This document shows, piece by piece, positions 1,346 to 39,263 of a DNA stretch of 64,000 nucleotides. Below the pieces are notes generated by a model. The model made no database searches. It saw nothing but the letters and a program-made list of their open reading frames with translations, and was not told the origin of the DNA. The DNA comes from Bugula neritina (lineage: Eukaryota; Animalia; Bryozoa). The stretch is taken from NCBI GenBank assembly GCA_964035545.1, contig OZ037769.1:16646633-16710632 (forward strand). The letters are read 5' to 3'. Position 1 is the first letter of the stretch; each line of letters opens with the position of its first letter. Made by a program: the position numbers and the translations under genes.

Positions 1346-3341
1346 GTTACTTACTGGAGCTATGAGAGCTTTTCTATGGTTGCCATGTTTGTTGTATGTG
1401 ACGGATGCCCAGTCTATTGCAGAAGACTATATTTTTTGGCTGAGGAGGCTTAGTGGAATTCCAGATGTGAATACATATCCAACCGTTATTAACTCTCTTC
1501 TTGTTAATATTCCAGTAGAGGTTGAAATAGAACTGGAGAACTCAGATCGTGAGCACTGTGACCCTCTACAGTCGTACTGTGTTCCATCTCAGTCAGCAGG
1601 AATCACCACTTCCACTAGTTCTACTAATATCTCAACTCCTGTAATAGTAGACTGTTTGCCTCAACGTTGTTTTTACCCAACATGTGGTCACTCGAAACCC
1701 AACTCTCTCAGTACCTTTCTGGTGTCTGAGATCCAATATCAAGTTGGCTCTCTAGACGAGGGATACTTACCCTTCAACACCTCTCTTCCAGAGTGCGGTA
1801 TCACTATGACAGGAAGTGATATCATCATCACCGAAGCTACAGGAGAGTGTAACACTGTTTTGTCACCTCAACAGATATATACCAGTTTACAGACTCCTTC
1901 ACAAAACTGGACTTTGATGTTCACAGTTGAGCAGCTTACATCACTGAATACGTCTGCACCGTGAGTCCTCTAACATAGACTGAGTCACATAGACTAACAT
2001 AGACTGAGTGAACTATTAACATAGACTGAGTAGGTCTATACTAGCATGTAATTTTGACTAATGTTTTATGAATCAAATGAACATTCAAATTTCTTTCTGT
2101 AACTTTTAGAGCTCCATTTCTCAACATTTCCGGCTATGAACCCATTATTAGAGCTCCACTTTTATTAATCAAATTAGCATTTAAACTACTTTCTGTAACT
2201 TTTAGAGCTCCATTTCTCAACATTTCTGGGTATGGATCCACTATTGACAGCCTTTCATTTGGAATATTCTGGACTCTTAGTTTCTGGTTTAATGAGAGTG
2301 GATACCTGGAAGCTAGTAACTCACCAGATCACAACCTGACAGTCTTTGACCAATACCCAACGCCGAGTCAAACTCAACACATAACTTTGCAGGTAGCTGA
2401 ACTGCAATTATTCCAGTGCTCAGTGATGATAATTATTTAATATTCACTGTATGTTATCTTTCATCTTATTTGTTTACAATTTGCAGTTTATTGAAGACAT
2501 AATCCTGGTATTTGTTGATGGAGAAGTATCTCACAGGTATTTACCACTTTCAAGCAGATTCCAGACTATTTCCGAGTACGTTGTTGGGTTTGGAGGGTCT
2601 GACATGACAGGAGAGTTTACCAACATCCAGTTATACAATGCTCAGGCCTCAACTAAGTGAGTCACTCATTTACTGTTTAAATATGTAACTGCTTTGTTAC
2701 TTGACTATTTGGGTACTTGTGTACTCAACTTGTTAGGTACTCAATAAATTGATTACATTACTACTTTTTTGTACTTAACCAATATAGCTCCTACCTATAC
2801 AGCTATCTTGAGTAATACTTGACTATGTTTTGGGTATTAAACTTTGTGTGCCTAATTACTTGGGTACTACCCCAGTATCTTACTGCTTGAACTCAAACTT
2901 TCCACACTATCATTTCTCAAAATGTGAATTTTTTTATTTTTAAATACATAAATAATGCACTTTTATTTACTGAGTACTGAATGACGAACTGCTGATCAAT
3001 CACTGATAAGTTGAATCACTTTCCTTTCTGTTGAGTACCATTTTTGTTCTCCTTTCAGTGAGATCTACTCCATGTACTCAGGATCTCCACTATCACTTTA
3101 CCGAATTCGACCCGAGTGTGAATGTCCTCGTCATTATTCTGACACATTCAGCTTTATTGCTGGAGATGAAAATCAGTTGGACTGTGTTGATCCGTACCAG
3201 AATTCAACTAGCAGGTTTGGGACTGAGACACCTTATGGCACTGCTAGCAATGGGAAACTTTCCATCTTCAACAGCAATGGCTGGAAATCAGACCACACTG
3301 ATGAGGCGGAGATAACTCTTAATTTCAATCAACCACTGTTG
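1346..3341 (+). CDS. Copy 1 exons 1-4: signal peptide, Cys-rich leader, LamG/concanavalin-like domain, start of laminin-N-like domain
   Basis: WTLSFWF...HITLQF...LVFVDGE...[24 protein letters not shown]...ECECP matches the LamG-like jellyroll pattern; exons are conserved in copies 2 and 3. Confidence 0.75.
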
Positions 3342-6300
3342 GTACGTCTCAATACAAACTGAATAATAAACAAAATAAAAATAAATTATTTAAATTTTGT
3401 TCGAAAAAAGGTAACTAAATGTAACTTTTTATGAAACAATGATGTCTTAATTTCTCAGATACCTGCAAGTTTAACAATTTTAACAATTTTAACAAACTTA
3501 GCCTCCCCACATCCGAGGACACACTACCACCGTCCAAAACCACCTCCCTCGCGACCTAAAGCGAGAGAGGTGCTCCCTGCAAGAGTAAGGCACGAAGAGA
3601 GAGTACAGGTACAGCCCCATGGGAACAGCTATTTCTTGCCCGGTAAAATAGAGGGCAAAGCTGTTACCTTCCTACTTGATTCCGGCTGTACCACGAACCT
3701 CATAAGTCGCCAACTCTTCAATACCCTCAGTACTAGGGTCAGCGGCGAGATGGAACCGTACGAGGAGAAGTATGGCTGACGGGTCGTGCATTCCCTTCTA
3801 TGGTATAATTGAGCTGACGGGACGCATTCGAGATCAACTGATCCAAGAGACGTTTATCGTCAGTTAGCTCAAGGAGGACGCCATCCTCGGGATGCCATTC
3901 CTAAAACGGCACGGATGTCACATCGACTTTAGCAAGTTTGCTATGGTGATGTCCGGGCGAAAACTCGCTTGTGTCGACAAGTTCAGCCGCCCCTTGGTGG
4001 GAGGCGTGCAGGTGGTACGAAACTGCACCGTACCAGGTCGCTCCCGGGCTACTATTCACTGCAGAGTGAACAATAACCGGTTCTCTGGACTCGGGGTAGT
4101 TGAAGGCGCGCATGAAAGAATCCAACTTGCCAGCAGCTTAAATCAGCTGACTGAGCGAGGAGAGATCTTAGTGCAGTGTGTAAACCCTTTTACTGAGTCC
4201 ATCAAGCTCCCAGTTGGGTCTATGTTGGGCCGGTTCCACTCTGTCCAAGAGGAGGACGTAGGCCCGTCGCTGGGAGATGCAACGGAGAAACCCCCTCAAC
4301 GCCCTAAAAGGGGCCAGGGACTGTCCCAACACACATCCGGAGTTATACGAGACAGCTTGTGGTGGCTGTGCGAGCAACGAGGAACACTAGGCTATGGCGA
4401 AGTTGCTACGCGACTATGGTGATGTGTTCAGTAGCGGAGGTCACGACGTGGAACTGGCTGGAGCTGTCAGACAAGAGATACCGCTGACTGCAGGAACAGT
4501 CCCTATTCGGCAACCCACATGCAAGTTGGGGCCGGAGAAGGAGGTTAGTCGACAAGTCCGGGATCTTCTAGACCGCGGCCTCACCGAGCCAGCCCACAGT
4601 GCGTGGAGCTTGCCGGTCGTGTTGGTCCTGAAGAAAGACGGAAGTTGGCGGTTCTGTGTGGACTACCGCAAGCTCATTAGCGTAACCATACAGGACGCCT
4701 ACCCTCTACCTCGTATTGATGAATCACTGGACGCCCTAGCCGGCAGCGAGTACTTCAGTACGTTAGACTTGTTGAGCGGTTACTGGCAGGTTCCTCTGAG
4801 TCCCGACGCCCAGGAGAAGGCGGCGTTTATCATCCGGGACGAACTGTGGAAGTGGAAGGTGCTGCTCTTCGGGTTAACCTCCGCCCCGGCCACTTTTCAG
4901 AGGCTGATGGAGCAAGTCCTCAGCAGACTCCACTGCACAGGATAGTTAAGGGCAGCCTTTTAGCTGCAACTGCCTTGCTGAGGTTTGCATTGTAATCATA
5001 TAAGAATTCAGTACCAGTAAAATAAAATCTCACCTAATTGTGCTAGAGTCAAAATTTAAAAACTATGTTGTAGATCTTCTTTTTCCCCAGTGTAAATTTT
5101 TTGGAAATTTCAATTTTCATTTTTTTTCTAAAGTTATAGACAAAAAACTGCCCAATTTTGGCCAATTTTGCCTGAAAAGCTGACTTTTCAGTACCAGTAA
5201 AATATCTCAGCAGCAAAACATGATATCTGAATTAAAATTGCGCTGTTGGAATCCTGAGATATTTTTCCAGTGTAATTTTTTTCTTTTTCCAATAACTCCT
5301 CTAGATTGCCCATAAATTGTTGATTTATACACTGAACATGCTCGACTTTTTCATAGATAATTAGCAGCGCGCAGCACTTCATGCTTCAATGAGCACAGAG
5401 GGATGATCAGATATTAGCGCGTACATACTAATTACAGGCTTGCTAGCTGGCAGGCTATAATGAATAGCTTGCTTTGTTCTTTGTTTATGTAGCACCCATA
5501 ATGGAACGTTTATAGATAACGCAGCTCTAATGAAGGTTGCTGCTTATTGGCTGTAGTTTAATCTTAGGCTAAACAATTGCAAGTAGGCAACACGCATGTC
5601 ACCCACAAAGCCATATTATTCAAGAACCTAAACTACATTTTGAGAAAAATTTATCATATTCTTAGTGAGGATGCCCTTAACTATCCTGTGTGGAAGACAC
5701 TGTTGATCTACCTCGATGATGTCATTGTGATCTCCCCAGACTTCGAGACACACGTCAGTCGTCTGCGGGAGGTTTTCGAAAGACTCCGAGGTGCCGGTCT
5801 GAAGCTATAACCTTCCAAGTGCGCTCTATTGCAGCCGGAGGTCAAGTACCTGGGGCACGTTGTCGGTCGAAACTGCGTGGCAACGGATCCCGAGAAGGTA
5901 CGGGCGATAGAGGACTGGGTCACCCTCCAAGATTTGACTGGACTCCGGGCTTTATTGGGTCTGGTAGGGTATTACAGACAATACATACCAGACTTTGCAG
6001 GGATAGCGCAGCCGTTAAATCGGCTCACCGCAAAGGGAGTGACTTGGCCGTGGACCCCGGTCGAACAAGGACCATTCGACCGCCTCAAGGGTTGCCTACT
6101 GACAGCACCCATCTTGGCTTACCCAGATCCTACTCTGGAGTACATCCTCGACACGGACACCAGTGACCAGAATGTTGGCGCTGTGCTGTCTCAAATAGTA
6201 ATAGCTTACTACAGCAAGTCTCTCTCACCCACTGAACAAAATTACTGCACTACCCGCAAGGAGTTGCTGGCAGTAATCAAGTCAGTGAAGCACTTTAGAC

Positions 6301-9300
6301 CATACCTGTACGGCAGGAAGTTCCGGCTGCGTACGGATCATGCCTCCCTGATCTGGTTGTGCAAGAGAGCAGAACCGTTCAGTCAGGTAGCCCGGTGGCT
6401 CGAGTTCTCCTACTGGATCGAACACCAGCCGGGTGGGAGGCACAGTAATGCAAATGGTTTGAGCCGGCGACCCGCTGGAGGTTGTAAACAGTGTCTCAAC
6501 ATTGAGAGGAGGGACGGAAGTCCCCCACGATGTGAGTTAGAGACGCTGGCTCACCACGGAGCACAGTTTGACTGGGACCAGGGTCAGCTCAAGCAGACAG
6601 CTGACAAGTGTTGTCCAGAACATCCGCGCCAACCCTGTTTTGGCCGATAATGTCCGGGAGCTGAAGAAGCTTCAGGAAGAGCTGCCTGGAGTAGTGGCAG
6701 ACATATATCAGGCCAAAAAGGAAGGGCGACGACCCAGCATGGAACAACTGCGACAGGGATGCGCCGAATTCCGGCTATTCTGCCAACGTTGGGACTCGCT
6801 GAGGATCGGGCAAGATGGTCTGTTGACCATTTTTATAGCTGCCAACGGCAGACACCCGGAGAGGAAGAGGGTGGTCTGCCCCAGTGCCATACGCCGTGAG
6901 TTAATTTGGAACACTCACAAACAGGCTCACGCAGGGGTCAAGAGAGTGATCTCCAAATTGCAACTCTAGTGGTATTGGCCCAAGATGGGGCGTGATGTCC
7001 GACTCAGAGTAAAGCAGTGTGAAATTTGCCAGGCCAGCAAGCATGGCCGTCTCCCTGGTGAAGCAGGACGGCGAAGGTTATATGCTGGAAGGCCGCGGCA
7101 AGTAGTAGCTGTCGACCTGGTCGGACCCATGCCCCTAACCCCCAGAAGCAATAGTTGGATCTTAGTACTCACCGACCACTTTACGAGGTGGGCGGACGCT
7201 CTGGCTATCCCAGATGCGTCAGCCCCGACAGTGGCCAGTGTGCTAGACCAACATGTATTCTGTTACTTCGGTCTCCCCGAACAGAAACACTCTGATCAAG
7301 GCGCTCAGTTCTAGTCTCAACTGATGAGCAACCTTTGCCGCCTCTGGGGAGTAAATCAGAGCAGGACCACCCCCTACCATCCCCAAGGTAACGGGGTGGT
7401 GGAGCGCAATAACCGTATGCTAGGTGATGCGCTCCAGAGTCTACTCCTTGGACGCAGTCAAGAGGAATGGGACACGGTGTTGCCGCAAGTCATGCGCGCT
7501 TACCGTAGCACCTCACACCAGTACTGGTGAGACCCCAAACCTCCTGATGCTCGGGAGAGCGACCCGAGTTCCTGATCATCTTACCTACCACGTTCCAGGG
7601 CAAGACAGCTCGGTTCACGAGTATGCCAGCGAACTAGTAGAACGGATGAGGGTCGCACACGAAATGCTGCAAGAAAAGCAGTGGCAGGTGCGGCGCGAGA
7701 AATCCGAGGAACCACCCCTCTATCAGAAAGGAGATTGGGTGTGGATAGTCAATTACTGTAGGCGTCGCGGACAGGTGGCTAAGTTACAGCCTAAGTTCGT
7801 GGGACCCTACGTGATAGTCGAGGCTATGCCCAACTATACCTACAAGATCGAGTGCTCAGGACATGTGTCCATCCAAAATGAGGCTCGCTTGAAGCCCCAT
7901 TGGGCTAGCCCAGACGCAGTGAGAGAAGCCCCCCCCCACCATTGTTGGAGCCCAGGAGGCAGACGACAATGCGTGGGCAAGGGCGGTATGGACCTGAATA
8001 TGAAGTGATCATTCCGCGGGAAGAAGACTTAGTACGAGACGAGCGACCGCTTTTACCTACAGAAGTGCGTTCGCTGCCTCCTACACCAAGTCTGATTCCA
8101 TCACTTCCAGAAACCGATCCGGTTCCGGAAGTGCAAACCCTCATGAAGGGAGGGGCTCCATCCGGAGAACAGGAAGAAGTAACCACTACCGGTGAATTAG
8201 AAGCGCCGTCAGAGGCCCCTGCTAATCCACCGGTGATTGCGCCACCTCCCCTAGAGCGGGGACAACCTACGAGACAACCCCGTCATATTTAAAGGATTTT
8301 GTATGTGACTGCATTAAAAGCGGCGCGTATGAAAGTCTAGCGAGGAACCGTACAGGAAAAGTATCAAGCAATTGCGGGAGTTGTCAACACCACGGAAAAA
8401 TCAACTTTTGTATCGACGGATTTAAAAATAAAATTTATCCGCCGAGCGTGCAAAGTCCTAGTCACGCACCCCAACCACGTTGCTCGATCTTTTTTTATGC
8501 TGATGCAGTCAAGAGCAGACATGTTCCTAGTCACTAGTTCAAACCATTTCACAAACATTCAGTATGTCATACAATACCGGATCATGGGGTGAGTTAACTA
8601 TGTCTTGATATGGAAACTAGATTGCATCACTCAGTTCCGACTCGTTCTCGTCAATTGAGCTAGAGATAAGCTAGTGAACTACAGTGGTAGAAACTCAGAT
8701 TGATTTAGAGGTTTCACAATCTTACTGCAGTGTGTGTTCTTTCCAACTACTCACTACCACAATCTCTACAAGTACCAACTGAACGAGAAGTTGCCAGGCT
8801 GTCTAAGGCCGACAACACTACAGTGTATTTTACTAACGCTGTTGAAACTCTTTCAAGTTACACTCGACCTGCTACAACCAGGGTACGGGATAGAGCACCT
8901 CCCGCTCCGCACCACGAGGAGCATACCAATGGCGGACGACCTGAGCCACTGCGCCGCCGCTGGCGGTGAGTGTCGCCGGAGACGGAGAAGAAGATAGAAG
9001 CGGCCTGGGGACCCAAAGGAAGGACACAATGCCAGATTTGCTACGAAGAGAGCCTGTCTCACCGCTTTCTGAGGCTACACGTCAATGCCCATTTCCTACT
9101 AACATTCTGTCCATGCGGACACAACGACGTCTACCCCTACCCCGTCACCAGGCATCGAGCGGCTGGATGCTTCCCGGGGGAGAACTATGTAGTAGATGCT
9201 GATTTCTATCCGGAATTTCTGACTCTCATACGGCCCTTGGTAAAGAAGGCGATGTTACTGGCTGTTCTAACCTCCAGTTTCCAGCATGTGTTAGACTATG

Positions 9301-12300
9301 CTAGACAGCAATCCCCATTGGTATCTGACCGCCCTCAGATTGTGTATACCCCGAAGAGTTCGCTTACCCTGAAGAAGAAGAAGAAGAAGTCTCACCCCCC
9401 TCATAGAAAACGAACACCATCTCCAGATCCTGCTTGCCTGGCCACTGTGGAGGAGCGTTTCCTTCGGCTGCAGGCTGAGTTCACCCAGTTAGCCCCGAAT
9501 CTACTCAGTACCACAACAGGACTTTACCAATTAAAAGGCTCTTTAGGCCGGATTAAACGGAAGCTACGTGCCCGTCAAGCCAAACATCGGCTTTCCAAAC
9601 ACTGACTCTGGTTCTTCTGTCTAGAATGATCAGTAAGCCTCACCCTCTTGGAAGTCCAAGGCTACAACGTACTATGATCATGTAAATGCTTGACGGCTCA
9701 TCTTCCTTGTCCAACACCACAGCTAGAGGTACTCTCTCTCTCTATAGCTAGCCAATTGTATGTGACTCGCTGTTATGATGATTGTGTCTGTCATTGTTAT
9801 ATATATATATATATGTGTGTGTTTGTATTATTTCTTTTGGTCTACTGATGTTATGTGTGTTAATTTTAAATATTTTTTTATCAGAAAGGGAGCTTTCTCC
9901 TGGTGGGGGCGGTGTGGTGGCTCGTGGAGCTACCAGCAACGTAATAAAGGGGAAATATTATTTCCCCCACGAGTGCAGCACGGGGTCATGTAGATGACCC
10001 GGAACAATGGACAGCCAATTAGCGACACTGACAGTTATTAGTAGTAGTAGTTTCTCGCTGTTATTTAGTTAAGAATAAAGTGTTGAATTGTATGGACGTA
10101 TCGATTAACTGAATGTATTTGTATAGTTTTTGTGATGTATTCTTGTGTGTAAAATATACTCGTATTAACTCGACTTATCCTGGTGAAGTTCTTTAGCAAA
10201 TAAATAGACTCTCTTGATTGCACTTCAACCCAAATCTGGAAATTATAACAGCTTGGCTCTGCCTGGATGGGTGTACTCCTACCCCTCCCCCTTCGTGCGG
10301 TGTATCGAAGACATTATCTATAAAATCCGACCGGTGGCGAAGCAGATGACATGATAAGACTGCGCGGGAGTACGACGCTTCTTCCCTATATTCATGTTCC
10401 TTACACAATCTGGTGAGGATGTACATCAAACCATGCCGACGGACTGTTTCTTTCTCGCATATTTTAAAAAATGTGTATGGCATCTATTCTGATTTGTTTT
10501 ATTCTTATGTATTTTATATTTCTTTTGTTATTATTCAAGTAGTAATTGACGAAGGTACCTTTCGATAGGAGGGGAGAATGTAAGGGTTTTTAGTAATGCA
10601 TTGGTTATATTGTAAGGGTTTTTGATAGTGCATTAGTTATATCGAAAGGATACTTCTCACTAAGACAGTTACATGATGCAGCCAGCATCATGCCATCAGG
10701 ATGGCCTGATCGTGTTGGCCAATGAAACAGGACTAGCAATTAATTAGTAGGCGGAGCTGTCGATGTACTGTGAAAGCATGCTAGGTAGCTTGATCGGCAG
10801 AGAGGACTGGATTGCGTTATAGTAAAGTCGTGTACTAATAGCTCTCTATGATGTAACAGTGCGTTATTTGTAGTCTCTTTTATTATTGTATGCTTAGATA
10901 AATAAATTCTATTCAAATCGTCAGCAACCTGATGAAATAGCTTTGTATAAGTTGACCCACTACTCTAAAGTGTGAACAGCGAAATTTACTACACTATAGC
11001 TATGTTAGTTTGTATGCTGGCTCTAAGGTACATGAAATTGTTGATTACTAGTTGGTTGTTACTAGTTGCTAGAACTTTACTAGTTACTAGTTGCTAGTTA
11101 CTAGTTGCTAGTTACTAGTATTTTACTACCAAGTAATCACTTTTGCATAGATATGCAAGTAACTTAGCCCTATAAATGACTGTGTTTTACAGAATAACTA
11201 TGGATAACCAAAGAACCACCAGTTTTGCATCTTTGTATCAAGTGAATGTGCTTCTACTATCTTTTTACAGATGTATGCTGTTACTGGCAATTTCCGTATA
11301 TTTCCGGATGTGAACTCGACACTTTTTCGCCCTGCTAGGATGGAGATTGAACTAATCAGTACTAACCCGGCTATAGAGGGTGCTGTATCTTACATCAGCG
11401 ATGACTGTTTAGAAGACTATGGTATAGATCCGTACAACTATAACACTGTGTTTGGAGAAGGGAATAGTATACTTCCTCAGAAAAGAAAGAAACGAGCTGT
11501 GGTACAGACAAACATTACACCAAAATGTTTCAACTGGAAAGATGTCGCTCCACCTTCTAGCAGGTATTTGAACACTATTACCACTTGCATGACTCATCAT
11601 CATAATCTGATTTATTAAACTCTGTTCTTGCTTTTAGAATTTTAGCTAAGGAATTTTTTATTTTCTCTAAAAAATTATAAATTGAAGGGAATGGCAGAAT
11701 GATTATTTATTAATAGAAAATTCATTAATAAAATATTAAATATTACATAGCATTTCTCTATACATGTTCTTTTAGGACGTTTTCTATAGAGCTTCTTTTT
11801 AGACAATTTATCTTGTTATGTGAGATTGCGTAATATTAGACATTATCAACATATGCCGTATGGTGATTCATAATAAAGGAGATAACTCTAATAGATTTCC
11901 ATTGTTGGACATAGGAGAATAGGTGTGCTGTGACCTGAAGCTTTAACTATTTTGATTAAACTGTGAAGATAGTTTAGGGACTAATTATATTTGGTGTTAA
12001 CTTAGAGTTTAAACCTCGCACTATGTTGTGTGTAAGTATTATTGTACGTTTCCAGGTATGTTAGTTGGTTTTACATTCCAATTCTGACACCTACCGAAGT
12101 GGGAGAGTACCTAAATGATGCGTACAGCAGCACTCAGTTGTACATCCGTCTCATTGGACACACGTCTCTTGTGGACGCTGCCAGAAAGGAAAACTGGTAC
12201 TGGATTAGGAGCCTTGGAATATACGGGAGGTAATAAGTTCTGCCTTTCTATCTCTATTACCAGTACCATGTTTCACAAAGTCATTATTTGTGTAGTAACT

Positions 12301-15300
12301 TGGAATACATGTGATGATGCAACTATAGCAACAGACATTCTTATAGTTTATTAACCTATATATGCTTAGTTTTAAGAAAGAACTGTAATATTAATTTGTT
12401 TCCATTAGTTTTCGAATTATTTATCTGTAGCACCTGGTAGTAATAAGTTATTGCAGTTTTTACTAACAAAGACTTTTTTAATTCCTAAGATTTACAATCT
12501 AGTAGACCTTCCTATGTGTCCAATGACTCACAATGAATACACAATATACAGATTTAGCAGCTCATTACTCTCATACCTTTCTTGCTTCTATCTCTAAAGA
12601 GTTTTTTACACGTTTTATAAATATAAAATGTTCTGGGAAAATCACGCTTACTATAATATAAGACGATTGAGTTTTTTCAACCTATTGCTTCCCTCTCCAC
12701 TTTATGCTAAATTCATGAAGCAAAGTTTTTTGTAAATACTGATTTCTGACTTTGATAATATTATTGGTCATTTGCTAATAAAGGTTTTAAACCTTTTCAG
12801 GTGTTTATCCTATATATGTATGCATTCATGTTCCTTTAGATAATCTGAAATGTTTTTTTTGTGTTTTACAATGCATAGATTGAAACTATTACCTCTGAAT
12901 TAATACTATTAATAAAAATGATATTGTATTGTGATAATTTATTCTCAGACCTCATTGCGGAGGGAATCCGTACCAGATACTTCCCCATTCAGCTGTTAAC
13001 ATGTCCAACTACTACCAGTTCACGAAGCCAGGATACAAGTTCTACGAGTGTACTTGTCCCCCGGGTGTCTCAGGAGATCAGTGTGAGCAGTGCATCAACT
13101 CCCCGGGGGTCTTCCGGTACACCAAGAGACTCGGCGTCTGTGCAGACTGCGCCTGCAGTGACCTTTCCATGAGTAAACAGTGTGATACATTCACTGGTCA
13201 ATGTCCATGTGAAGGATCTGTAGATGTTGAGCTCGCTGGCCGCCAATGTGTGAGATATTAGTAACAATTTAGCATTTCCTGTACTGGCTACCATGTAGTG
13301 CGTAGACAGTTTTGGTAACAAAGCGAACTAATTTAGCATTTATCATAAATTGTCATCATGTTTGTTAGTTTATATGCAGCTATTTTGTGTCCTATATAAA
13401 ATTATCACATAATAATGGAATGCTAATATCACCATAATTTTGGTAATTAAAGTTTTCGTGTTGCAAGGAATTTCGAAAAGAAAACAGAAAAAAAGCTTAA
13501 ACGTTTATTCTAGATTCTTTATTCCAGAATGTTTTTTTATTTAGCATTGGTACATTGACGACATTGATCCACAGTACGGGCCAAAAGCTGGAGGTACCGC
13601 AATCACATTCAGTGGTGGATACTTTGGCAAAGGGGATCTTGTGGTTGAGATCAACGGTGTGATACAAAGATTGAGTGTCAAGTTCGTTACAGATACATCC
13701 TACTCTCATTTCGTGAACTTGTATGACTGATAGAGCAGTGCACTACTACCCACACTAGATAATATCGTAAGATATTGAATGTACTTATTATATTTTCACA
13801 GTGGTAGTGAACGAACTTTAAACTCTACGCCATACCTTGGAGTTGCCTTACCAAATGAGACCTCCACTGTTGGATTCACTGCCATACTCACAAACTCTAC
13901 TGTAGATCTTGGTCCAGAGACTCTGTACTATTTTTTTGAGTACAGACCTAACCCTATCATAGAGGACATCTACCCTCGTGCCACCATCCTCAGGTAGGAT
14001 CCAGTTTCTACTACATATACCCACAATATATACAGAGTATTATATATAATTTTACTATAATTACATTGAGTATTGATTTACAATACTATTACATAACAGT
14101 AATATCTAGTATAGGCGTAGCTTGTTATACATCTTAGAGTAAACTTAGTATAATGCTGCTAGTGTTTCATACAAGTTTGGAATTGTCAACAAATTTCTTT
14201 GGCAAATTTTTTTAGTGATTTAAACAAGTATTTCAGCACAAAAGATTGAACAGCTTTTTACATCTGAACAAATGATATATGTGTATGTATTTTAGTACTT
14301 TTCTATGTCATCCAAGACTATATATATTAGTTATGTATTGTCATATAGGATATTAATTAAGTATGGCCATTGTATTACATTGCTAGTACATTTTATAATA
14401 TATTATTTTATAGCTCCTTAGTTCTATTGCAAACAAAGAGGGATGACTATAGTATATATTCTCTAATAATCATTACCTTTTATTTTTTATTATTCCCAAA
14501 TGCATAAATATATGTAGTTTTAGTAAAATTGTATGGATATTCACATATATATGCAGTTTTAGCTTTACAGATGATTCATTTTTACAATTGTATTTTGCTG
14601 TTCTCTTGACAGTGGAGGTACAAATCTTACGGTAGTTGGAGAACATTTAGATTCTATTGCCTACCCTGAGATGATTGTTTATTTGACTCAAAGAGCTGTT
14701 CCTATTGGCCAGTTGTCTACGGTAAGTAGAGCTATAAACTGTAAACTTGTACTGTCATATAAATAGTAAAAGGTTATGTAATACTGACTACTAATAAAAT
14801 CTAGTTATCTGGTCTATAACTGTTGTGTTGTTTGACTCGCTATTATTCACCGCGAGACTCGTTGAGCTCGGGGATTTTCCTACTAGCTAGAATTGAAATA
14901 AATCACGATAATTATCAGCTTAGACTCAATCCAACGTTGTTGTACTCTTACGCACCAATCACACAATAACTGGAGAGGTCTCAGTTTATTTTCTTTCAAC
15001 CTCATCTCTCCATTGCGAGATTCTTGAGTGTAAAGTAGATCTACCCAATCAAAGCAGCGTGTTGTCAAATACTTTAGTTTGGTTGGCTACATGTTTTAAT
15101 AGTTTTAAAGGCAAAAATTATTATCTTTGGAATACTCTTTTACCTGTAAACATATTACATGATTGACTTGTAGCGCTGTGATGTCATAGAAAGTGATGAG
15201 ATGGTGTGTAGAGTAGCAGATCTGTCTATATCAATACCGTATCTGAATGGTGTGAAACAAGGTAACACCTACATTCTTATACTATATGTATCAATATAAG

Positions 15301-18300
15301 TGTACACAGTTACTTGCTATTCTATACACTAGAGATATCATTGTGGGACACTAGACAAGCATCGTGAATATCATTATCATTTTGAATATAAGCTAAGTTT
15401 TAGTGATGTCCAGTCTATAAAATAGAATATACTTTCTTCTAGCACTTCCTGGGAATGTGTCACTTCCTGTGAACAACGTGTCACTTCCTATGAACAACGT
15501 GTCACTTCCTATGAACAACGTGTCACTTCCTATGAACAACGTGTCACTTCCTGGGAACAACGCGTCACTTCCTGTCAGCTCGTCATCAACTACTTCCTCT
15601 ACACCAGGTGAGTCGATACCCTGAGTTAATATTGGTTAGGTGTTTTGCTAATTTAGTCTACGTATCCTAACTCTAGTAAGGGAAGCAGACAGTATGTTTC
15701 TATAAACAACTCACTACTATACATTATATCATAGTTTATAATCTTTTAAGAAACACTGTATCTGTTTAGAATTAATAGCCAGGTGGAATGTAATATTTCA
15801 TGCTGAGTGAAACGATATTAAACAGTTTTCCAATTTGGTATACTTATTCATGAATATAAAATGTGTAAATTATCTGTTACTAACTTATAATCTTATATGT
15901 AGGGGGAGTTGGTAGGAGAAAGAGACAGGTGACTACACCTGCTAATTCGGGTAATGTTGGTAAGGCTAACAAATCTGTTCTATTTTATTCAACGTTGACT
16001 AATAAAATATATATGTTTACCAAACATTTTTATAATAATGTTATTAAATTCACAAGAGATAATTTGAAATTGAAATTATGTGAAGGCACAGGTAACACAA
16101 TTGGATTAACGGTTTGATAGCAAAAGCTCCTTTAGGACTGTGGGTAATATTCTAGTACAATCATATTCATTGTGAAAAAAGACTTAGTGTAGACCATTAG
16201 CAATTTCTTTAGTTAATGTATATTTATATTTATATTATTATATTTTCTCAAAATAGAGACATTCTTTGTAATATTGCTATGTTCCTAGACATAAACACTC
16301 TATGAACTATTGTTATATTTTTGTAGAAATAGACACAGCCAATGCTCTCAACCAACTGTCAAATGTGCAGTTCACTTTGGGTTTTGTATTTGATGGTTAT
16401 GCAGAGTACACAGACTTGAGACAGAGTACAGATAAATACCTCAGAGACTTGGCTACTCTTTACGTCTACCAAGATCCTGTAATAGAAGAATTCAAGGAGA
16501 GTAGCGGGAATGAGGTTTTGGTGAGTGTTGTTTATAGCTGAGAGTGGTAAATTCCTGTACTAACTCTGTATTGTTGATTGAATCAATTGCCTCAAGCGTC
16601 TCACTAATTGTGTGTTAAAGCTTTGATCATCCAAAAAGTGCATCAAGTAATGCAGCCTTCACAATCTGCTGCAATGAAACTTTAAAAGCCTGTGTTTCTA
16701 AATAATATTAATATTCAAGATTAACTTATGCTCTCTCAAGATATTTAAGTCGAGTCCCAAAAATCCCATTTATACACTCAACGAGTTTGAAATATTGGAA
16801 GTTGTCCTTTCTTGTGTAGTAACATTGTGGGTTGAATGAAACTAAGTACTGAAAATATCTCTTTGTAAGAGAGAACAAGATGGAGGGTACTCATTAGTAA
16901 TAGCAATCTTTATTGAAGATTGATATAGTGATCTTCAACAGGCGAGCTCCAGTGGTAGACTGAATCTGTACTGGAACTCGCCTGCTTTTATACATACAAG
17001 ACAAAGACACGTGCACACAAAAGAATCCTTTGTTGTCCAAAAATTGAGAGCCCGAAATGCCGATCCTCGGGATTTCAGAATTTCGGGACCCCGAAATACC
17101 GAACTTCGGTATTTCGGCCTTTTGGGACTCTGACTTTCGGGAAACATAATTTCAGTATCAAAATTATTACACAACGATTAAAAGTAATAAAAGAAGAGAT
17201 AACCTTATATCATAAATCTCTACTACAATTGTACCTATAACCGAACATTATAAGAGTCTAAACTCTAAAGTTAATAAAGTTGTGAGATGAGTCGTTTATA
17301 GTATTTTGTTTGTAACTTTAAGGTTGGTGTATAAGAAAGGGTTCCCGTAATTAATTGATGCTTCTGAAGTTATAGCTAAGTTGGTGTAGTTCACTTTTAA
17401 TTTGTTTTACTGCTATGAAAAATGTTTGTAAATTTGTAGGACTATGATGCTGGTAATTTGATACATATAGATGGAGATAAATTAGACTACGCTACTACTG
17501 TATCAGACTACATTGTCATCATAGGAGTAGATGGAGTGTGTGAAGTCACTAGTTTGCTGCTAAACCGTCTGAGTTGTAGACCTCCCAGCACCAGCCCTGA
17601 TCATGACCCTAACAACTCTATAACTTACAAGAACCGTGATATCCCCCATATTGAGGTTAGTAGCCAATCATATTCACTCAAGACTAATTTCTAGAAACTC
17701 ATAATCTGCTGTTAAAACTTGATCATAATCTGGTTTTCTATCTATTTTAACTTTGCTTTACTCCTTTTATTTTGAAGTTTAGCTTACACTAGCTATTTAA
17801 ACCTAATCGTAGTTACAATCAAATGGGATCCAAGTTACACTGACTCTTAACCTAATAATCAAAATAATAAAAGCGCACATAATTATATTGAACTTTACTA
17901 AATATACAAAGTTTAGCCATCAAGGGTATTTAGTCTTTGTTAGCAATAATGTAGCTTTTTATCTTTATTTCCTTCAAATGGGTTTGAAAACCTATTTCAT
18001 GCAACTATTTGATCTGGATATCTGGAAATGCAGAGTTGTGTATGTTTACCAGGTAAAGGTTGGTAACAAGAGAGTCAATGTTGGGTATGTCTTCTATAAG
18101 ACTAACATCTGGCAGACTAACCCTGCCTTTAGGATCTCCATGATTGTGCTGATGGGCGTAGTGGGTGTGGCTCTCATAGCAGTACTAATCTACTGTCTGG
18201 TTAAGAAGTTCTACCTAAAAGAGAGGTTGGGGAAAACCTTAGAAGTTGACGCTGAAAACAGCGGAGGCCATGCTAGATATATAAAACAAGGTGAGTAGAG

Positions 18301-21300
18301 GACTTTTGTGTGAAAGTGTAGCTCACAATATTGAAGGGTAATTTCTACAGAGTGAATTGGTAAATTACTAACTAATTAAATGTTAAGTAAACTGTATTAA
18401 ACAGTAGTCTGCTTTAATTGACCAATGGATGGGTTGTTTTGATTTTTCCAGACAGTTCAAGCGAAATGGAGACTCTTGTTCCTCTTTTCAACAACCAAGA
18501 ACTTGACGTCGAGATACAAGCCAAAGTAAATCGCTGTAAAATACCATCTTCAAGGCTACGTATAGGAAATCAGCTCGGGAAAGGTCAATTTGGACTTGTC
18601 TATAAAAGTCAATTAACTACACCAGCTGGAAATTTAAGAACTGTAGCTGTTAAAAGTATTAAAGGTTAGTATTTAAGGGTTGAACAACACAAACTATTTA
18701 TTACCGATTTGGTTGTATCATTAACAACTAGTTTTTAGTAAACTTTGTGATAGTCTAATGAATATTATTCTCCCGTAAAAGTAACTATAATAAATAATTA
18801 TTTTGTATAAGTTTTAAATTCAAATTTTGTAAACTATACTGCATAATTCTGTTCTGATGTACTGTGCTGTAACAATTTTAACCCAGATAGTGAATGTTAG
18901 TGAAGGGTGCATGTATCATATTCAATCTGTTTCTGTTCACCAGAGGATAAGGAAATGACGTTTGAAGATTTGGAGAATTTCCTCTCGGAAGGCGTGTTGA
19001 TGATTGACTTTAAACACGAGAATGTCCTTTCATTGGTCGGTGTAGTGTGCGAGCCAGGTGAACGACCTTTGGTTGTCCTTCCTTATATGGAGAACGGTGA
19101 CCTTTGTTCTTTTGTGAAGAAAGATGATTTGGTGAGAAAACTGTGTTCTGACCTTTGTGAAGGTCATCTGATGTTTCGCACATCAGTAGTTATAGAAACC
19201 GGTAGATTTACTTAACTTTCTCAGCCTAAATACTGAATTTACTGATACAAAAAAGCAGAACTGTTTCATGGAAAACTGTTTTATGAATATGGAAACATAA
19301 TTATTAATTTTTAGAAACACAGTTTAGCTTGTTTTGTTTTGCTATTTCAATAAACTAAGTAAATATTTAGCTGGTTAATTTAATGATTCCAAAGGGCTGG
19401 TAGATACCAGAAACAGCGTTGAAATGTCTTGCAGCGGTGCGTCTGATATAAACTAAGGGTTGTTCAACATTGCCTGTGCCACCCCATGCTCTAGGCTAGC
19501 ACCATCTTTATTTCAAGCTTGAATGGTCTTGCAATACATCATATACTTTATATGTGCAAAGTTTAGAGTTGTTTTTCCCTATGTTGGAAAATAATGATGA
19601 TAATACAATCAATGACTTTTAATAGAATCAATGAAGCTAGACATGCTTTATCCTGCAGTGAAAGTCTAGGCAACCTAGCTAAGGTCATCAACATATAATT
19701 GACAATAATAATATAATGAATGTATTGTATATAGGTGGTTTCATTTTAGGAAATAGTCATGGCTGACTTGCTTCACTTTGCCTATCAGGTAGCTAATGGA
19801 ATGGCTTATTTAGCCAAGGAGAGATTTGTTCATCGAGATTTGGCAGCCAGAAACTGCATGTGAGTTGTTTCCCCTGTTCTTTTTATTCACTGCTTTTCTT
19901 ATTAAATGATTTATGACTGGATACTGATATTAACTCTTTTGGACCATCAGTTCCTTCACACTTGAGCGATTATTCACCCTTCTATATTAATTTCTCATTT
20001 CGATCAAAACAATACCAATGTATTTCAGCTCAATTGTTCTCAAAAGGAAAGACAAATTTAATTGTCAAAACTATCAACTTTGATAAATTATTAAGCTTTA
20101 TTTACCACATAAGCTATTTTCAAAGACTATTGTTAATAATAATACGTCCTGGTCTCTGTTGATTGGTTGTGTAGGGTTGATGGATCTTACTTTGTGAAGA
20201 TAGCAGACTTTGGTATGTCCCGTGATGTCTACTCACAAGATTACTACAGAATGGGAGACATGAACAAACCTCTGCCAATGAAATGGATGGCAGTGGAGTC
20301 ACTGAAGGAAGGGAAATACACATCAAAGTCTGACGTGGTACGGGTACATTTTATCTTTACTCAGTAAGCAGTTTTAGCTAAACTTTGTCATTCACTGAAA
20401 AGTTGTGCTGTTCTTTGAATTATTTTGTTCTACTTCCATTTCATTTATAATCTTTAATTACTGATATTTTTATATTATATTATGTAATTTACGATGTATT
20501 CTGATTTAGTGGTCTTTTGGAGTAACTGTGTGGGAGTTACTCACCCGTGGTAGCACACCATACCCAGGAGTAAGCAACTACCATATTAAAGAATATGTCT
20601 CCACTGGTAAACGATTGGACAAGCCTGAAATATGTCCTCCAATCATGTGAGTTTACAGAGTTTAGTGCATGCATTTATTCATGCTAATACTTGAAATGCG
20701 TTTTTATTTTTCTTCATAACTGACTTGGTGTCAAATTAATGTTTTAATGTTGCCTATTACTTGACTGTGTTTTAGTGAATGACTGTTATTGAGTGATTGA
20801 CTGTAGCATAGTGACCATGACTCAGTGATTGACTGACTCAGTGAGCGACTCACTTAGTGAGCCACTGACTCAGTGATTGACTATGACTCAGTGATTGACT
20901 GACTCAGTGAGTGACTCACTCAGTGAGCCACTGACTCAGTTGTTGACTATAACTCAGTGATTGACAGACTCAGTATACGATTAGCCATTTCCTGTTGCCT
21001 CTGAGTGTAATGACATGACATCATCTACTCTAGATATGAAATGATGTGCCGATGTTGGGAGACAGATCCTGAAGATAGACTTGCTTTCTCTGAGATTTCC
21101 AAGTTTGTTGGTCAACTACTGAATGGTACGACAACTCCCAGTGCTGGCTCAGACAATGATGCTGGTTATTCATACTCACGCTCAACTACAAAGGACATCC
21201 CAGATGACTACCTGGCGTTGGAAGAATACGCGGATAACTTGGAGCGTGATGACTATTACATAACACCACTCCCCTCTGCCACAGCACTTACAGTGGTGGA

Positions 21301-21397
21301 TGGTACCCCTAAACCCTCCCCTAGGGTCCCCCCTCGCACAACACGCTGTCAGGAAGCTGAAAGAGTGTACGTCAACACAGGAAACAAGTCGACATAG
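1362..21397 (+). CDS. RTK copy 1: MET/RON-family receptor tyrosine kinase with usherin-like (LamG/LN/LE) + IPT ectodomain, apparently intact (~1,506 aa)
   Basis: Exons with GT-AG boundaries and consistent phases: 1346(ATG 1362)-1960, 2206-2392, 2487-2656, 3059-3341, 11271-11563, 12056-12229, 12949-13249, 13545-13681, 13802-13993, 14613-14721, 15174-15261, 15443-15607, 16327-16520, 17440-17655, 18053-18290, 18452-18664, 18944-19131, 19750-19859, 20175-20337, 20510-20646, 21034-21397. The sum from the ATG is 4521 nt (multiple of 3). Signal peptide [43 protein letters not shown]. Kinase motifs [71 protein letters not shown]. Confidence 0.9.
4936..5690 (+). mobile_element. 755-bp non-autonomous CAC-terminal (EnSpm/CACTA-like) DNA transposon, copy 1, inserted in Gypsy A RT
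   Basis: TIR CACAGGATAGTTAAGGGCA / TGCCCTTAACTATCCTGTG, 2-bp TSD TG; splits the RT codons LH|WKT. Confidence 0.9.
8970..9605 (+). CDS. Gypsy A accessory ORF: C2H2 zinc finger + CxC..H..C motif + coiled-coil
   Basis: [29 protein letters not shown], heptad-like C-terminus. Homologous to ORF 51935-53008 in element B. Confidence 0.65.
   Translation: MSPETEKKIEAAWGPKGRTQCQICYEESLSHRFLRLHVNAHFLLTFCPCGHNDVYPYPVTRHRAAGCFPGENYVVDADFYPEFLTLIRPLVKKAMLLAVLTSSFQHVLDYARQQSPLVSDRPQIVYTPKSSLTLKKKKKKSHPPHRKRTPSPDPACLATVEERFLRLQAEFTQLAPNLLSTTTGLYQLKGSLGRIKRKLRARQAKHRLSKH
10579..10992 (+). mobile_element. 3' LTR (with PPT) of a second, older Gypsy element into which A inserted
   Basis: PPT GATAGGAGGGGAGAA then TGTAAGGG...TACTACA; homologous to the solo LTR at 28976-29379. 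Confidence 0.7.
11271..13249 (+). CDS. Copy 1 exons 5-7: laminin-N-like domain end and laminin-type EGF repeats
   Basis: [20 protein letters not shown]...[15 protein letters not shown], then [15 protein letters not shown] and [21 protein letters not shown]...GRQC (LE cysteine spacing). Confidence 0.8.
13545..18290 (+). CDS. Copy 1 exons 8-15: about 3 IPT/TIG domains and transmembrane helix
   Basis: [54 protein letters not shown]...[16 protein letters not shown]...VKVGN...VGYVFY are typical MET/plexin IPT motifs, followed by a hydrophobic TM and KK stop-transfer. Confidence 0.85.
15451..15573 (+). repeat. Coding 21-bp minisatellite (xNNVSLP)n in exon 12
   Basis: atgaacaacgtgtcacttcct, about 6 units in copy 1 and about 2 units in copy 2 (33901-33943). 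Confidence 0.9.
15903..15959 (+). CDS. Candidate symmetric phase-1 microexon ([16 protein letters not shown][GNV]) encoding a furin site
   Basis: TACTAAC branch point at 15878-15884 and AG at 15901-15902. In-frame donors at 15951 (48 nt) or 15960 (57 nt, GTAAGG). Phase matches the flanking exons. Confidence 0.6.
16815..17227 (-). mobile_element. Solo LTR related to element C LTR
   Basis: TGTAGTAA...TACTACA; shares gcgagctccagt..ctgaa..ctggaactcgcctgcttttatac with 55105-55669. Confidence 0.75.
18452..21397 (+). CDS. Copy 1 exons 16-21: MET-like tyrosine kinase domain and C-tail with YVNT motif
   Basis: All catalytic motifs present. [13 protein letters not shown] and the activation-loop YY are characteristic of the MET/RON family. 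Confidence 0.92.
20818..20975 (+). repeat. ~66-bp intronic tandem repeat rich in TGACTCA
   Basis: Unit tgactcagtgattgactgactcagtgagcgactcac... repeated about 2.4 times; degenerate homolog at ~38690-38940. Confidence 0.75.
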
Positions 21398-27296: not shown

Positions 27297-30200
27297 GTTA
27301 CTTCCAGGAGCTATAAGAGCTTTTCTATGGCTGCCATGTTTGTTGTATGTGGCAGATGCCCAGTCTAGTGCAGATGACTATTTTATTTGGCTGACAGAGT
27401 TAAGTGAAATTCCAGATATGGGTTCATATCCAACCATTACTGACTCTTTTCCTAATATTTCAGTAGAAGTTGAAATTGAACTTAAGAACTCAAATCGTGA
27501 GGCCTGTGATCCGTTGAAGTTTTACTGTCAGCCGTACAAGTCTGCAAAAACCAATGTTGCCTCTATTTCTGAAGTAGTGGGCTGTTTGCCTCATTCATGT
27601 TGGTACCCAACATGTGCTCACTCGAAACCCAACTCTCTCAGTGCCTATCTGGTGTCTGAGATCCAATATCAAGTTGGCTCTCTAGACGAGGGATACTTAC
27701 CCTTCAACACCTCCCTTCCAGAATGCGGTATCGCTATGACAGGAAGTGATATCAACATCACCGAAGCTACAGGAGAGTGTAACACTGTTTCGTCACCTCA
27801 ACAGATATATACCAGTTTACAGACTCCTTCACAAAACTGGACTTTGATGTTCACAGTTGAGCAGCTTACAGCACTGAATACGTCTGCACCGTGAGTTCTC
27901 TAACATAGACTGAGTAACATAGACTGAGTAACATAGACTAATATTATAGTCTGTTCGTCTGAGTTTGTCTACTAGCTAGCATGTAATTTTTATTATTGTC
28001 CACTCATCAGATTTGAAGTTAAATCACTTTCCGTATATTTTAGAGCTCCATTTCTCAACATTTCTGGGTATGGACCCATTATTGACAGCCCATCATCTGG
28101 AATATTCTGGACTCTTAGTTTCTGGTTTAATGAGAGTGGATACCTGGAAACTAGTAATATAATAGAACGCCAGTTAACAGTCTTTGACCAAAATCCACTG
28201 CTGAGTCAAACTCGACACATAACTTTGCAGGTTGCTGAACTGTATATACTCTGCCACTCTGTTGTGAATGATAATCATTTTACATAATATGCATTATTTA
28301 CTTTACTTTCTATGTATATGAACAGCTTCAGCTTTAATCTAGCTACAAGAGCTATAGAGCGTTTACCTTGAAGTTGTCCTTTTTGTTAAATTTTCAGTTT
28401 GTTGGAGACATAATTCTGGTATTTGTCGATGGTGAAGTGTCTCACCGGTATTGGCAAGGTAAAATCTCTTTCCCATCTGCTTCAGAGTACATTGTCGGGT
28501 TTGGAGGGTCTGACATTACAGGAGAGTTTACCAACATCAAGTTATACAATGCTCAGGCCTCCACTAAGTGAGTGATTCATTTACTGTTTGAATATGTAAG
28601 AAATTTGTTAATTAACTTCTTAAGAACTAAATAATTTGAGCATTTGCATAACTCTTCTCGTATTCAATAATCCAGTTACTTTACTACTTCCGTACATAAC
28701 CTACCCATTCAATTATTTCTATGGTACTTGACTATGCTTTGAATATTATTCCTGTGTCCTGGGTACAGCTCCAGTATCGTTCTATTTGAGCAGTTTAGTA
28801 CTCAAATCTTCCACAAGATTTCACAATTTGAGAAGTAGAAGTTTTTACTTCTCAACTTGTGAAATCTTTAGATCTTATATAACAGAATATGTCAATACAG
28901 TTTTTTTGCATATTTTTAAGCACTCCAGACTTTTAAAAGTAGTAGATTGAGAATTTGAATTTGTTTCTTAAATATTGTAAAGAGTTTGGTGTTGTGTTCC
29001 CACTTGGTTAGTTTTTATATCGAAAGGATAACTCTGTACCTGACCGATACATGATGCAGTCAGCATCATGTCGTTACGATGGCACCACCGTGTACGGCCA
29101 ATGGGATGTAGATAACAATTAGTAGTAGGCGGAGCTGCCAATGTATAGTCGAAGCTTGTTAGACAGCATGGCCGGCAGAGTAAATTGGATCGTAGCAATG
29201 TAAAGTCATGCATAAATCACTCTTTGTTATGTAATCATGTGCGTTAGTTTTAATATCTTTTATTGCTGTAGGCCTATAATTCGTAATAAATAAATTCTAT
29301 TCAATTCGTGATAAATTCCTGGTGAAGTGGCTTTGAATAAGTAGACCCACTAATTACAGTGAATCCTAAATTCACAACAATACTGTGTTTATTCTTAGTA
29401 AATTTTTTAGGCGTGATTGCTGAATCACTCATTGCTGATGACTCACTAATTAGTTGAGTCACTATATGTTTTTTGTTGAGTAACATTTCTGTTCTCTTTC
29501 CAGTGAGATCTACTCCATGTACTCTGGATCTCCACTAGCTCCGTACCAAATTCGACCCGAGTGTGAATGTCCCCGCCATTATTCTGACACATTCAACTTT
29601 ATTGGGGGAGAAGAAAATCAGGTTGACTGTGTTGACCCATACCAGAAATCAACTAGCAGGTTCTTGATTGATGCTGACAGCCACGGGAAACTTTCCATCT
29701 TTAACAGCAATGGCTGGGTGTCAGACCATACTGATGAGGCAGAGATAACTTTTCATTTTAATCAACCAATGTTGGTAGGTCTCAATATAAACTAAATGGT
29801 GAACAAAATACACGATGAATTTTAAAACTTTTTCCTTAAAAACGCAATTAAATTATATAATCTTTCTATAAGACGAAAATTTCCTAAATTTTATGATACT
29901 CACAAGTTTAAGAATTTGAGTATTGTTGATTTGTTAAGCTAAAAAAATTCAATAACTTGCTCAAATATAGCTATACAGTAGTTTTTATATTGGCTTTGAA
30001 ATACATGAAATTTGTACAGCTGTTAGTTGACTAGTTTCTATAGTTATTAGCTACTAGTTAGTAGTTATTATGTAGCTAGTAATAGAAAGTAATAGTTATT
30101 AATTACTATAGCTGTTACTTGATGTTGCTAGAATTGAAAGTTGTTAATTGCTAGCTGATAGACATTAATTGCACGTACATGCACAAGCGTGTTCAGAGTA

Positions 30201-39200: not shown

Positions 39201-39263
39201 TTGGAGCGTGATGACTATTACATAACACCACTCCCCTCCCACACCACGCTCTCAGGACACTGA
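27297..39263 (+). CDS. RTK copy 2: paralog of copy 1; altered or possibly decaying
   Basis: Exons 27297-27890, 28044-28230, 28398-28567, 29504-29774, 30277-30578, (30692 cryptic or ~30734)-30910, 31306-31606, 32661-32797, 32926-33114, 33292-33400, 33627-33714, 33894-33977, 34502-34695, 35440-35655, 36051-36288 (GC donor), 36450-36662, 36977-37164, 37655-37764, 38171-38333, 38437-38573, 38996-39263. Kinase motifs are intact. The exon-6 acceptor is mutated and the C-tail is frameshifted. Confidence 0.8.
28976..29379 (+). mobile_element. Solo LTR in copy 2 intron 3
   Basis: TGTAA...AACA, flanks ATAT/ATAC, homologous to 10579-10992. Confidence 0.75.
31705..32290. mobile_element. Palindromic foldback MITE (TTAA-flanked, Kolobok-like)
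   Basis: About 285-bp near-perfect inverted arms around a ~9-nt spacer (31991-31999); TTAA at 31701-31704 and 32291-32294; absent from copy 1 intron 7. Confidence 0.8.
34343..34418 (-). ncRNA. tRNA-derived (Ala-TGC-like) Pol III cassette within a ~190-bp TG..CA insertion (34256-34448)
   Basis: Minus strand: A-box TGGTGTAATTGG, CCTGCTTGCAAGCCGG, B-box GGTTCAAATTCC, followed by ATTATTTT. Confidence 0.55.

Follow-up and report, generated by a model that had tools for sequence, protein, structure and literature searches.

Gene A and its domain architecture

We analyzed a 64,000-nucleotide stretch of the genome of the bryozoan Bugula neritina (contig OZ037769.1, G000:C5:16646633-16710632), which is referred to here in its full length as the window. 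It consists of AT-rich animal DNA with a GC content of ~0.35 that is interspersed with GC-rich transposon islands. The subject of this analysis, gene A, occupies window positions 1346-21397 on the + strand and comprises ~21 exons and ~1,520 codons with intact reading frames. We read gene A, with a probability of about 0.8, as an intact gene that codes for a MET-lineage receptor tyrosine kinase of type I, the head of which was derived from the N-terminal module of usherin, composed of a LamG-like domain, a laminin N-terminal (LN) domain and laminin-type EGF (LE) repeats, and not from the Sema-PSI module.

Exon-sized open frames follow one another in domain order on the + strand from position 1311 to position 21397, and a frame-consistent GT-AG intron path connects all of the exons of gene A (Table 1). 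The encoded order is a signal peptide, a Cys-rich leader, a LamG-like domain, an LN-like domain, LE repeats, an IPT/TIG stalk, one transmembrane helix and a tyrosine kinase. A single transcript would be expected to run over the whole of gene A. All queries used in this analysis were either single exons or natural database proteins. Public Bugula neritina proteins are 85-90% identical to the products of the window, not 100%, which makes this genome closely related to that of the GenBank B. neritina assembly.

Gene A sits in a young tandem and inverted cluster that also contains its inverted neighbor Z, gene B and the broken copy C. An old paralogue, gene D, is located at C5:17.45 Mb, which is 0.74 Mb from gene A, and is 31-54% identical. 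In addition, a 12.9-kb metagenome contig (L028) carries the family from the head through the transmembrane exon in the same colinear order. The putative start codon, an ATG at 1362, is present in gene A alone, the same codon being ATA (Ile) in Z, B and C, and it is preceded by a polypyrimidine tract and a CAG acceptor at 1345. Thus, the true start of gene A may be located in an upstream exon. The limits of exons 11 and 12 (14924-16091) are also uncertain.

Table 1. Exons of gene A and the retroelement in its fourth intron (window coordinates)
Feature	Position	Strand	Content and remarks
Exon 1	1346-1960	+	Possible acceptor 1345/1346; ATG 1362; signal peptide, Cys-rich leader, first LamG-like strands; ends in phase 2; 72-87% identical to paralogues Z, B, C
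Exon 2	2206-2392	+	Middle of LamG-like domain; splice pattern same as GenBank B. neritina model P0003
Exon 3	2487-2656	+	LamG-like tail; ends in phase 2; profile ranks usherin exon U4 first; intron place and phase as in usherin
Exon 4	3059-3341	+	CxCP linker and start of LN-like domain; ends in phase 0; best-conserved head exon
Retroelement	3435-9700 (right end approximate)	+	Decayed, Ty3/Gypsy type; inside intron 4, outside coding sequence
Exon 5	11271-11563	+	LN-like core, loop with furin-like RKKR (11484-11495); ends in phase 2
Exon 6	12056-12229	+	End of LN-like domain, closing in ..YGR; ends in phase 2; GR/C intron as in usherin
Exon 7	12949-13249	+	~2 LE repeats; ends in phase 0; final head exon; 47-93% identical to paralogues
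Exon 8	13545-13681	+	First half of IPT1; first stalk exon; phase-0 acceptor; conserved in Z, B, D, Watersipora, L028, L030
Exons 9 and 10	13802-13993, 14613-14721	+	End of IPT1 and IPT2
Exons 11 and 12	~14924-15029, ~15903-16091	+	End of IPT2, linker with furin-like RRKR (15914-15925); no significant paralogue match for exon 11
Exons 13 and 14	16327-16520, 17440-17655	+	Membrane-proximal IPT-like domain; conserved in Z, B, D, L028, L030
Exon 15	18053-18290	+	End of stalk, transmembrane helix (18134-18202), basic stop-transfer, juxtamembrane segment
Kinase exon	18452-18664	+	Gly loop, VAVK
Kinase exon	18944-19131	+	Kinase domain
Kinase exon	19750-19859	+	HRDLAARN
Kinase exon	20175-20343	+	DFG; activation loop YSQDYY (20230-20247)
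Kinase exon	20510-20646	+	Kinase domain
Last kinase exon	21034-21397	+	Tail with YVNT (21368-21379); TAG stop (21395-21397)

When Pfam was run exon by exon, only three families were detected in gene A. Specifically, EGF_laminin was found at 12938-13258 (E 1.6e-7), TIG at 13545-13727 (E 6e-5) and 14575-14763 (E 0.12), and PK_Tyr_Ser-Thr on six exons between 18418 and 21394. The locus was also recovered in a genome-wide TIG scan. A third IPT repeat is probably present as well, and the IPT-like domain of exons 13 and 14 went undetected by Pfam. No Sema match was obtained on any gene A exon, the Sema matches of this genome being located at three other, unrelated loci, and no PSI match was obtained on these exons at E values up to 1; the exon that precedes IPT1 is the EGF_laminin exon. 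Pfam likewise found no F5_F8_type_C domain on the exons of gene A and no FN3 or Laminin_G domain downstream in this gene, where the C-terminus is the kinase. The Cys-rich leader of exon 1 showed no resemblance to anything tested, either in Pfam or in the usherin rank test described below. A reading of the head as a Sema domain was considered and rejected: the region that follows the LamG-like domain is ~220 residues long, matches LN models and gives no Sema match.

The sequence-only reading that preceded this analysis had put forward the same domain order and had stated that Sema and PSI were missing. Both statements were borne out, with the order of open exons on the + strand, the Pfam matches to LE, TIG and kinase and the transmembrane helix confirming the arrangement directly, and with the LamG-like and LN-like domains being supported indirectly. 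That reading had also named the Pfam families to be expected, of which EGF_laminin, TIG and PK_Tyr were found, with LamG_3 and Laminin_N escaping detection in the exon by exon analysis.

Two furin-like sites are encoded in the ectodomain. The RKKR site of exon 5 recurs in Watersipora and in L028, and the RRKR site of the stalk recurs in L028 and in gene M, a relative on C2 that is described further below.

A tandem repeat of NNVSLPM was also observed at 15421-15621, between exons 11 and 12 of gene A. At this same position gene D exhibits a 643-codon Thr/Pro/Ser-rich open frame (L004:7017-8945) and L028 exhibits mucin-like frames (L028:9764-11079), and all three are located between IPT2 and the RRKR site. 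The stalk of this receptor may carry a mucin-like insert that varies.

Affinities of the head and of the body

We compared the head of gene A with the usherin gene of this same genome, which a genome scan with Pfam Laminin_N and Laminin_G_3 placed at C3:5.953-5.963 Mb, where a LamG_3 exon is located just upstream of the LN exons. As a contiguous stand-in for the head we used P0004 (XP_067931128.1), a 704 aa protein of Watersipora subatra that is annotated as uncharacterized, since its eight exons and their borders are the same as those of gene A. Profiles of the individual head exons were built from P0004, from paralogues A, Z, B, C and D and from database fragments. MAFFT stacked the fragments of exons 1, 5 and 6 on exon 4, and the alignments used for hhalign and HMMER were made exon by exon. 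These profiles were then ranked against all open frames of at least 25 aa from the usherin locus, from seven other LN genes of this genome and from unrelated loci, a set that amounted to 1,647 frames and later to 2,383 frames.

The rank test returned usherin exons in colinear order. Profile E3 ranked usherin exon U4 (the LamG_3 tail) first, profile E4 ranked U6 and U5 first and second, profile E5 ranked U7 (the LN core) first, profile E6 ranked U8 third and profile E7 ranked a usherin LE exon first. By our own calculation, the random chance that E3, E4 and E5 would all choose exactly colinear usherin exons is ~1e-12. Furthermore, four introns coincide between the head and usherin in both place and phase. 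The first comes after the LamG tail and is separated by one residue from the conserved Glu that follows (phase 2), the second is located inside the LN domain after an ITL/ITV strand (phase 0), the third splits the LN domain midway, behind the second loop Cys (phase 2), and the fourth separates the LN domain from the first LE repeat at GR/C (phase 2). The usherin intron between U5 and U6 is absent from the receptor.

Fold comparisons with an ESM Atlas model of P0004 gave a similar picture. Residues 150-345 match Laminin_G_3 (21 of 30 feature hits, score 0.91, TM-score 0.51-0.58) and residues 357-560 match five Laminin_N clusters that include netrin-1, laminin gamma-3 and netrin-G2, with a TM-score by query of 0.61-0.64 over 174-179 residues. 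When the head was compared by hhalign with an alignment of the LN domains of this genome, one local match was obtained that places head positions 394-455, in exon 5, on LN positions 78-136, which is the expected register but marginal (P 0.02). Taken together, the fold matches of P0004, the colinear rank test, the four shared introns and the marginal profile comparison support derivation of the head from a usherin-type LamG-like/LN/LE module that has diverged almost beyond sequence recognition. As a separate observation, the usherin gene (G000:C3:5953000-5963000, L014, minus strand) also opens with a signal peptide and a Cys-rich leader of its own in front of the LamG-like domain.

Regarding the body of gene A, the second kinase exon, K2 (frame 18904-19212), has its best matches with MET chains (50 bits), followed by RON (41 bits) and then by MER/AXL (40-34 bits). 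All catalytic motifs are present in the kinase, including the Gly loop and DFG, so that to judge by sequence the kinase looks active. MET has twin tyrosines in the activation loop and a multi-substrate docking site at the C-terminus. The activation loop of gene A has a YxxxYY arrangement, in the form of YSQDYY, and its tail contains a single YVNT; the bidentate motif of MET is not present as such. On the basis of the K2 ranking, of an IPT stalk that adjoins the membrane, of the YxxxYY loop and of the YxN tail tyrosine, we provisionally read the body as belonging to the MET lineage. The earlier description of gene A as a usherin-like head on a MET-type body is thus supported on both counts, for the head by the top-ranked colinear usherin exons of E3, E4 and E5 and the four common introns, and for the body by the stalk, the K2 scores, the activation loop and the C-terminal YVNT.

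There are several results that weigh against this reading of gene A. Pfam did not detect Laminin_N or Laminin_G_3 in any of the head exons or in P0004, and a search of 1.84 billion proteins with the exon 4 profile returned no usherin or laminin, its matches being short exon-like fragments, two B. neritina fragments and a single long protein, P0004. The single scores of the rank test are at noise level (7-15 bits), so that weight can be given only to the colinear coincidence of the matches. The Atlas model of P0004 is of low confidence (mean pLDDT 0.50), and an AlphaFold model of P0004:330-660 from a 24-row alignment reached a pLDDT of 40.8 and was discarded. On the kinase side, exon K4 does not discriminate between TRK, insulin receptor and MET, and the kinase was placed by the single exons K2 and K4. 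Finally, RefSeq divides the Watersipora gene into a 704-aa and a 793-aa model, and the joining of exons in gene A is predicted from genomic DNA. Other searches with the homologue were uninformative: apart from P0004 itself, a single metagenome fragment was all that was recovered with the complete P0004, with the LE exon and with P0004 540-704, and phmmer of P0004 against PDB sequences gave no match.

Some of these results would also fit a head that is a generic or convergent jelly-roll of the laminin/netrin or discoidin type and is not specifically derived from usherin. In addition to the missing Pfam matches to LN and LamG and an hhalign result no better than P 0.02, the Atlas feature search puts DDR DS-like and F5/8C clusters above netrin, with scores of 0.85 or less, and the LN-start exon of gene M scores F5_F8_type_C (0.0028) above Laminin_N (0.059, weak). 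However, a LamG-like domain directly in front of LN, followed by LE, is the usherin arrangement, and in the rank test the usherin exons come out, in colinear order, ahead of those from the seven other LN genes. The four introns common to the head and usherin and the fact that the best structural matches are all Laminin_N proteins also argue against it. We consider this explanation to be unlikely and retain a usherin-derived head as the preferred reading.

The head-stalk junction and comparison with known receptors

The head is joined to the stalk at a phase-0 intron (13249/13545) that separates the end of the LE exon from the start of the first IPT exon. This junction recurs in four loci of this genome and in three other assemblies. 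Specifically, the order of head, LE, IPT, transmembrane helix and kinase with short introns is observed in Z, B, D, Watersipora and a GenBank B. neritina contig and, as far as the transmembrane exon, in L028. In the RefSeq 704-aa model of Watersipora the LE exon is spliced to the first exon of the IPT stalk, and a GenBank B. neritina model of 1,040 aa covers exon 5 through the kinase and thus covers the junction as well. The phase of the LE-to-IPT intron fits replacement by exon shuffling, which is how the Sema head was probably replaced in the gene A lineage.

With exon joining taken from genomic DNA, gene A could in principle be two neighboring genes that have been misread as one, the first (exons 1-8) coding for a secreted usherin-like protein and the second (exon 9 on) coding for a headless IPT-TM-kinase receptor. 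The RefSeq annotation of Watersipora has this form, as the 704-aa model ends in the first IPT exon and the 793-aa model begins 450 bases downstream. However, this split falls inside IPT1 and the end of the 704-aa model reads into an intron, so that it looks like an annotation break. Moreover, the second part of gene A has no signal peptide of its own, the tight colinear order with compatible phases recurs in Z, A, B, D, L028 and L030, and the GenBank B. neritina model extends from exon 5 through the kinase. A pair of misread genes is therefore quite improbable, and we continue to treat gene A as one gene for a single receptor.

Receptor tyrosine kinases are assigned to classes by their ectodomains, and in the MET family as it is accepted today the ectodomain is always Sema-PSI-IPT. 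Gene A resembles MET and RON in having an IPT/TIG stalk by the membrane, a single transmembrane helix and a K2 exon that is closest to MET and then to RON. Further apparent parallels are its YxxxYY activation loop, the YxN tyrosine near the C-terminus and, in the ectodomain, a basic site of the furin type. It differs from them in that there is no Sema propeller or PSI domain, with the head being composed instead of LamG-like, LN-like and LE domains, in that its furin site is located in the LN loop and in that ~3 IPT domains are detected as opposed to the four of MET. Relative to usherin (USH2A), the domain order, the CxCP linker after the LamG tail and the GR with which the LN domain closes ahead of the LE repeats are all the same, and the four intron positions and phases are those of this genome's own usherin. 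In contrast, sequence similarity to usherin is near undetectable, gene A has ~2 LE repeats versus ten in usherin, and it ends in a kinase without the FN3 array, LamG pair and PDZ-binding tail of usherin.

Several other known designs share part of this architecture. The Met-LP proteins are variants of MET found in invertebrates (spiralians and echinoderms) that also combine an altered ectodomain with a tyrosine kinase, but their ectodomain is that of a complete plexin with Sema, PSI and IPT repeats (Junqueira Alves et al. 2019, PMC6374515), with no such Sema-containing ectodomain being present in gene A. DDR1 and DDR2 are receptor kinases in which a jelly-roll head of the galactose-binding type reads the extracellular matrix, and they may offer a functional analogy. 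They also gave the top Atlas feature match (0.85), which we take as a lead only, since DDR1 and DDR2 differ from gene A in the family of the head, the stalk and the class of the kinase, K2 matching MET and not DDR. Lastly, netrin-G and the laminin short arm have the LN-LE supradomain as a membrane-attached binding module and provided the best structural matches for P0004 357-560, but their LN domain is not preceded by a LamG-like domain, and both the IPT stalk and the kinase are missing.

Full-text literature searches that combined usherin, laminin N-terminal or LamNT with receptor tyrosine kinase, IPT, bryozoa or Spiralia returned no description of this design. The survey of MET, which searched by the Sema domain, lists only MET and Met-LP (PMC6374515), and a 2022 receptor review gives the same picture, with Sema-PSI-IPT ectodomains only for MET and Met-LP (PMC10084454). 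The earlier claim that no described receptor class has this architecture is therefore in agreement with the literature that we searched. If our reading is correct, part of the MET family is overlooked by surveys that start from the Sema domain. The design is now invisible in databases because public annotations divide these genes into several pieces without names. The combination of a usherin-type head with the stalk and kinase of a MET-like receptor would also represent a clear and datable exchange of heads by exon shuffling, given that the intron places and phases survive on both sides.

A mode of action can be proposed for this receptor. The LamG-like/LN-like/LE head would bind an extracellular partner, with a matrix or cell-surface molecule being likelier than a growth factor of the HGF type, and the IPT stalk would act as a spacer between the head and the membrane. 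A protease of the furin type would cut the LN loop at RKKR, and perhaps also the stalk at RRKR, to give a two-chain receptor that is held together by disulfides, as in MET. Ligand-driven dimerization would then lead to phosphorylation of the YxxxYY loop and of the tail tyrosines, one of which is a YVNT of the Grb2-binding type. We infer the cleavage, the class of ligand and the signaling from these sequence features.

A receptor family and the neighborhood of gene A

Gene A is one member of a bryozoan receptor family and not a single chimera. Within the cluster, dS is 0.07-0.40 when gene A is compared with Z and with B. The head exons have dN/dS values of 0.27-1.0, with the highest values exhibited by exons 1 and 2 in comparison with B (0.84-1.0), and the kinase exons have dN/dS values of 0.14-0.57, with five of the six values at or below 0.25. 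This indicates that the head is constrained but far less so than the kinase, and the head evolves faster than the kinase.

Gene B (27313-39254, + strand) is a complete tandem copy that is 68-96% identical to gene A by exon. Its final exon stops early, and as a result the YVNT tail is missing. Gene C (41606-63958, + strand) runs off the end of the window. It retains exons 1-4, the fourth of which is frameshifted near 44275/44278, whereas exons 5-13 were not found, exon 14 is located at 54871 and the transmembrane and kinase exons follow from 62583. GC-rich retroelements occupy ~46-52 kb and 56-62 kb of gene C. That gene A is itself a decaying copy in this transposon-rich cluster is very improbable, since the features that could suggest decay (a ~6 kb retroelement in intron 4, the clearly broken neighbor C, the dN/dS of 0.84-1.0 for head exons 1 and 2 relative to B and the poorly defined exons 11 and 12) are offset by exons that are all open along a consistent GT-AG path, by the presence of every catalytic motif, by dN/dS values that stay under 1 for the majority of exons and amount to 0.14-0.25 for most of those of the kinase and by a retroelement that is wholly intronic.

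Outside of the cluster, the kinase exon nearest to that of gene A (66%) is found in gene M, located at C2:14.109-14.124 Mb (L024, L025), which codes for a signal peptide, a CxCP linker, an LN-like domain, LE, IPT, an RRKR site, a transmembrane helix and a kinase. The LN-start exon of gene M matches usherin U6 by BLASTP with an E value of 5e-5 in a small database. A second gene at C2:14.58 Mb contains LE, IPT, a transmembrane helix and a kinase. As side observations, the LN exon of gene M is slightly more recognizable than that of gene A, and the old paralogue D has an activation loop without twin tyrosines that reads ..GNSYKM.. (G000:C5:17460000-17462700, L010). The kinase exon of D is 48% like that of gene A, and several unrelated receptor kinases are closer to gene A.

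Beyond gene A itself, we lean towards the existence of a bryozoan class of MET-lineage kinases in which the Sema-PSI head was swapped for the usherin LamG-like/LN/LE module at a phase-0 intron, followed by tandem duplication with a fast-changing head. Such a class, if real, would fit a receptor whose extracellular partner varies, for example the matrix, a symbiont, a settlement cue or, given that the animal is colonial, self/non-self, rather than a receptor of an HGF-type ligand. With four young copies, one old copy and relatives in other bryozoans, it would also constitute a tractable system for studying the coupling of a newly acquired ligand-binding module to a signaling body that was already in place.

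A lone frame that resembles exon 4 was observed at G000:C4:12794603-12794836 (L003, L005), with 38% identity to gene A and 79-85% identity to B. neritina fragments. No other exon of the receptor family was detected near this frame, which may be a relic copy.

The decayed retroelement in intron 4 of gene A contains protease, reverse transcriptase, RNase H and integrase matches (Pfam) in several frames and has a GC content of up to 0.48-0.55. No pair of long terminal repeats was found, nor were there direct repeats of at least 80 bases. After its integrase there is a 211-aa open frame (8970-9602, + strand) that has a C..C...H....H stretch and no Pfam match, and which looks like the accessory gene of another Gypsy copy that is located at 51935-53008.

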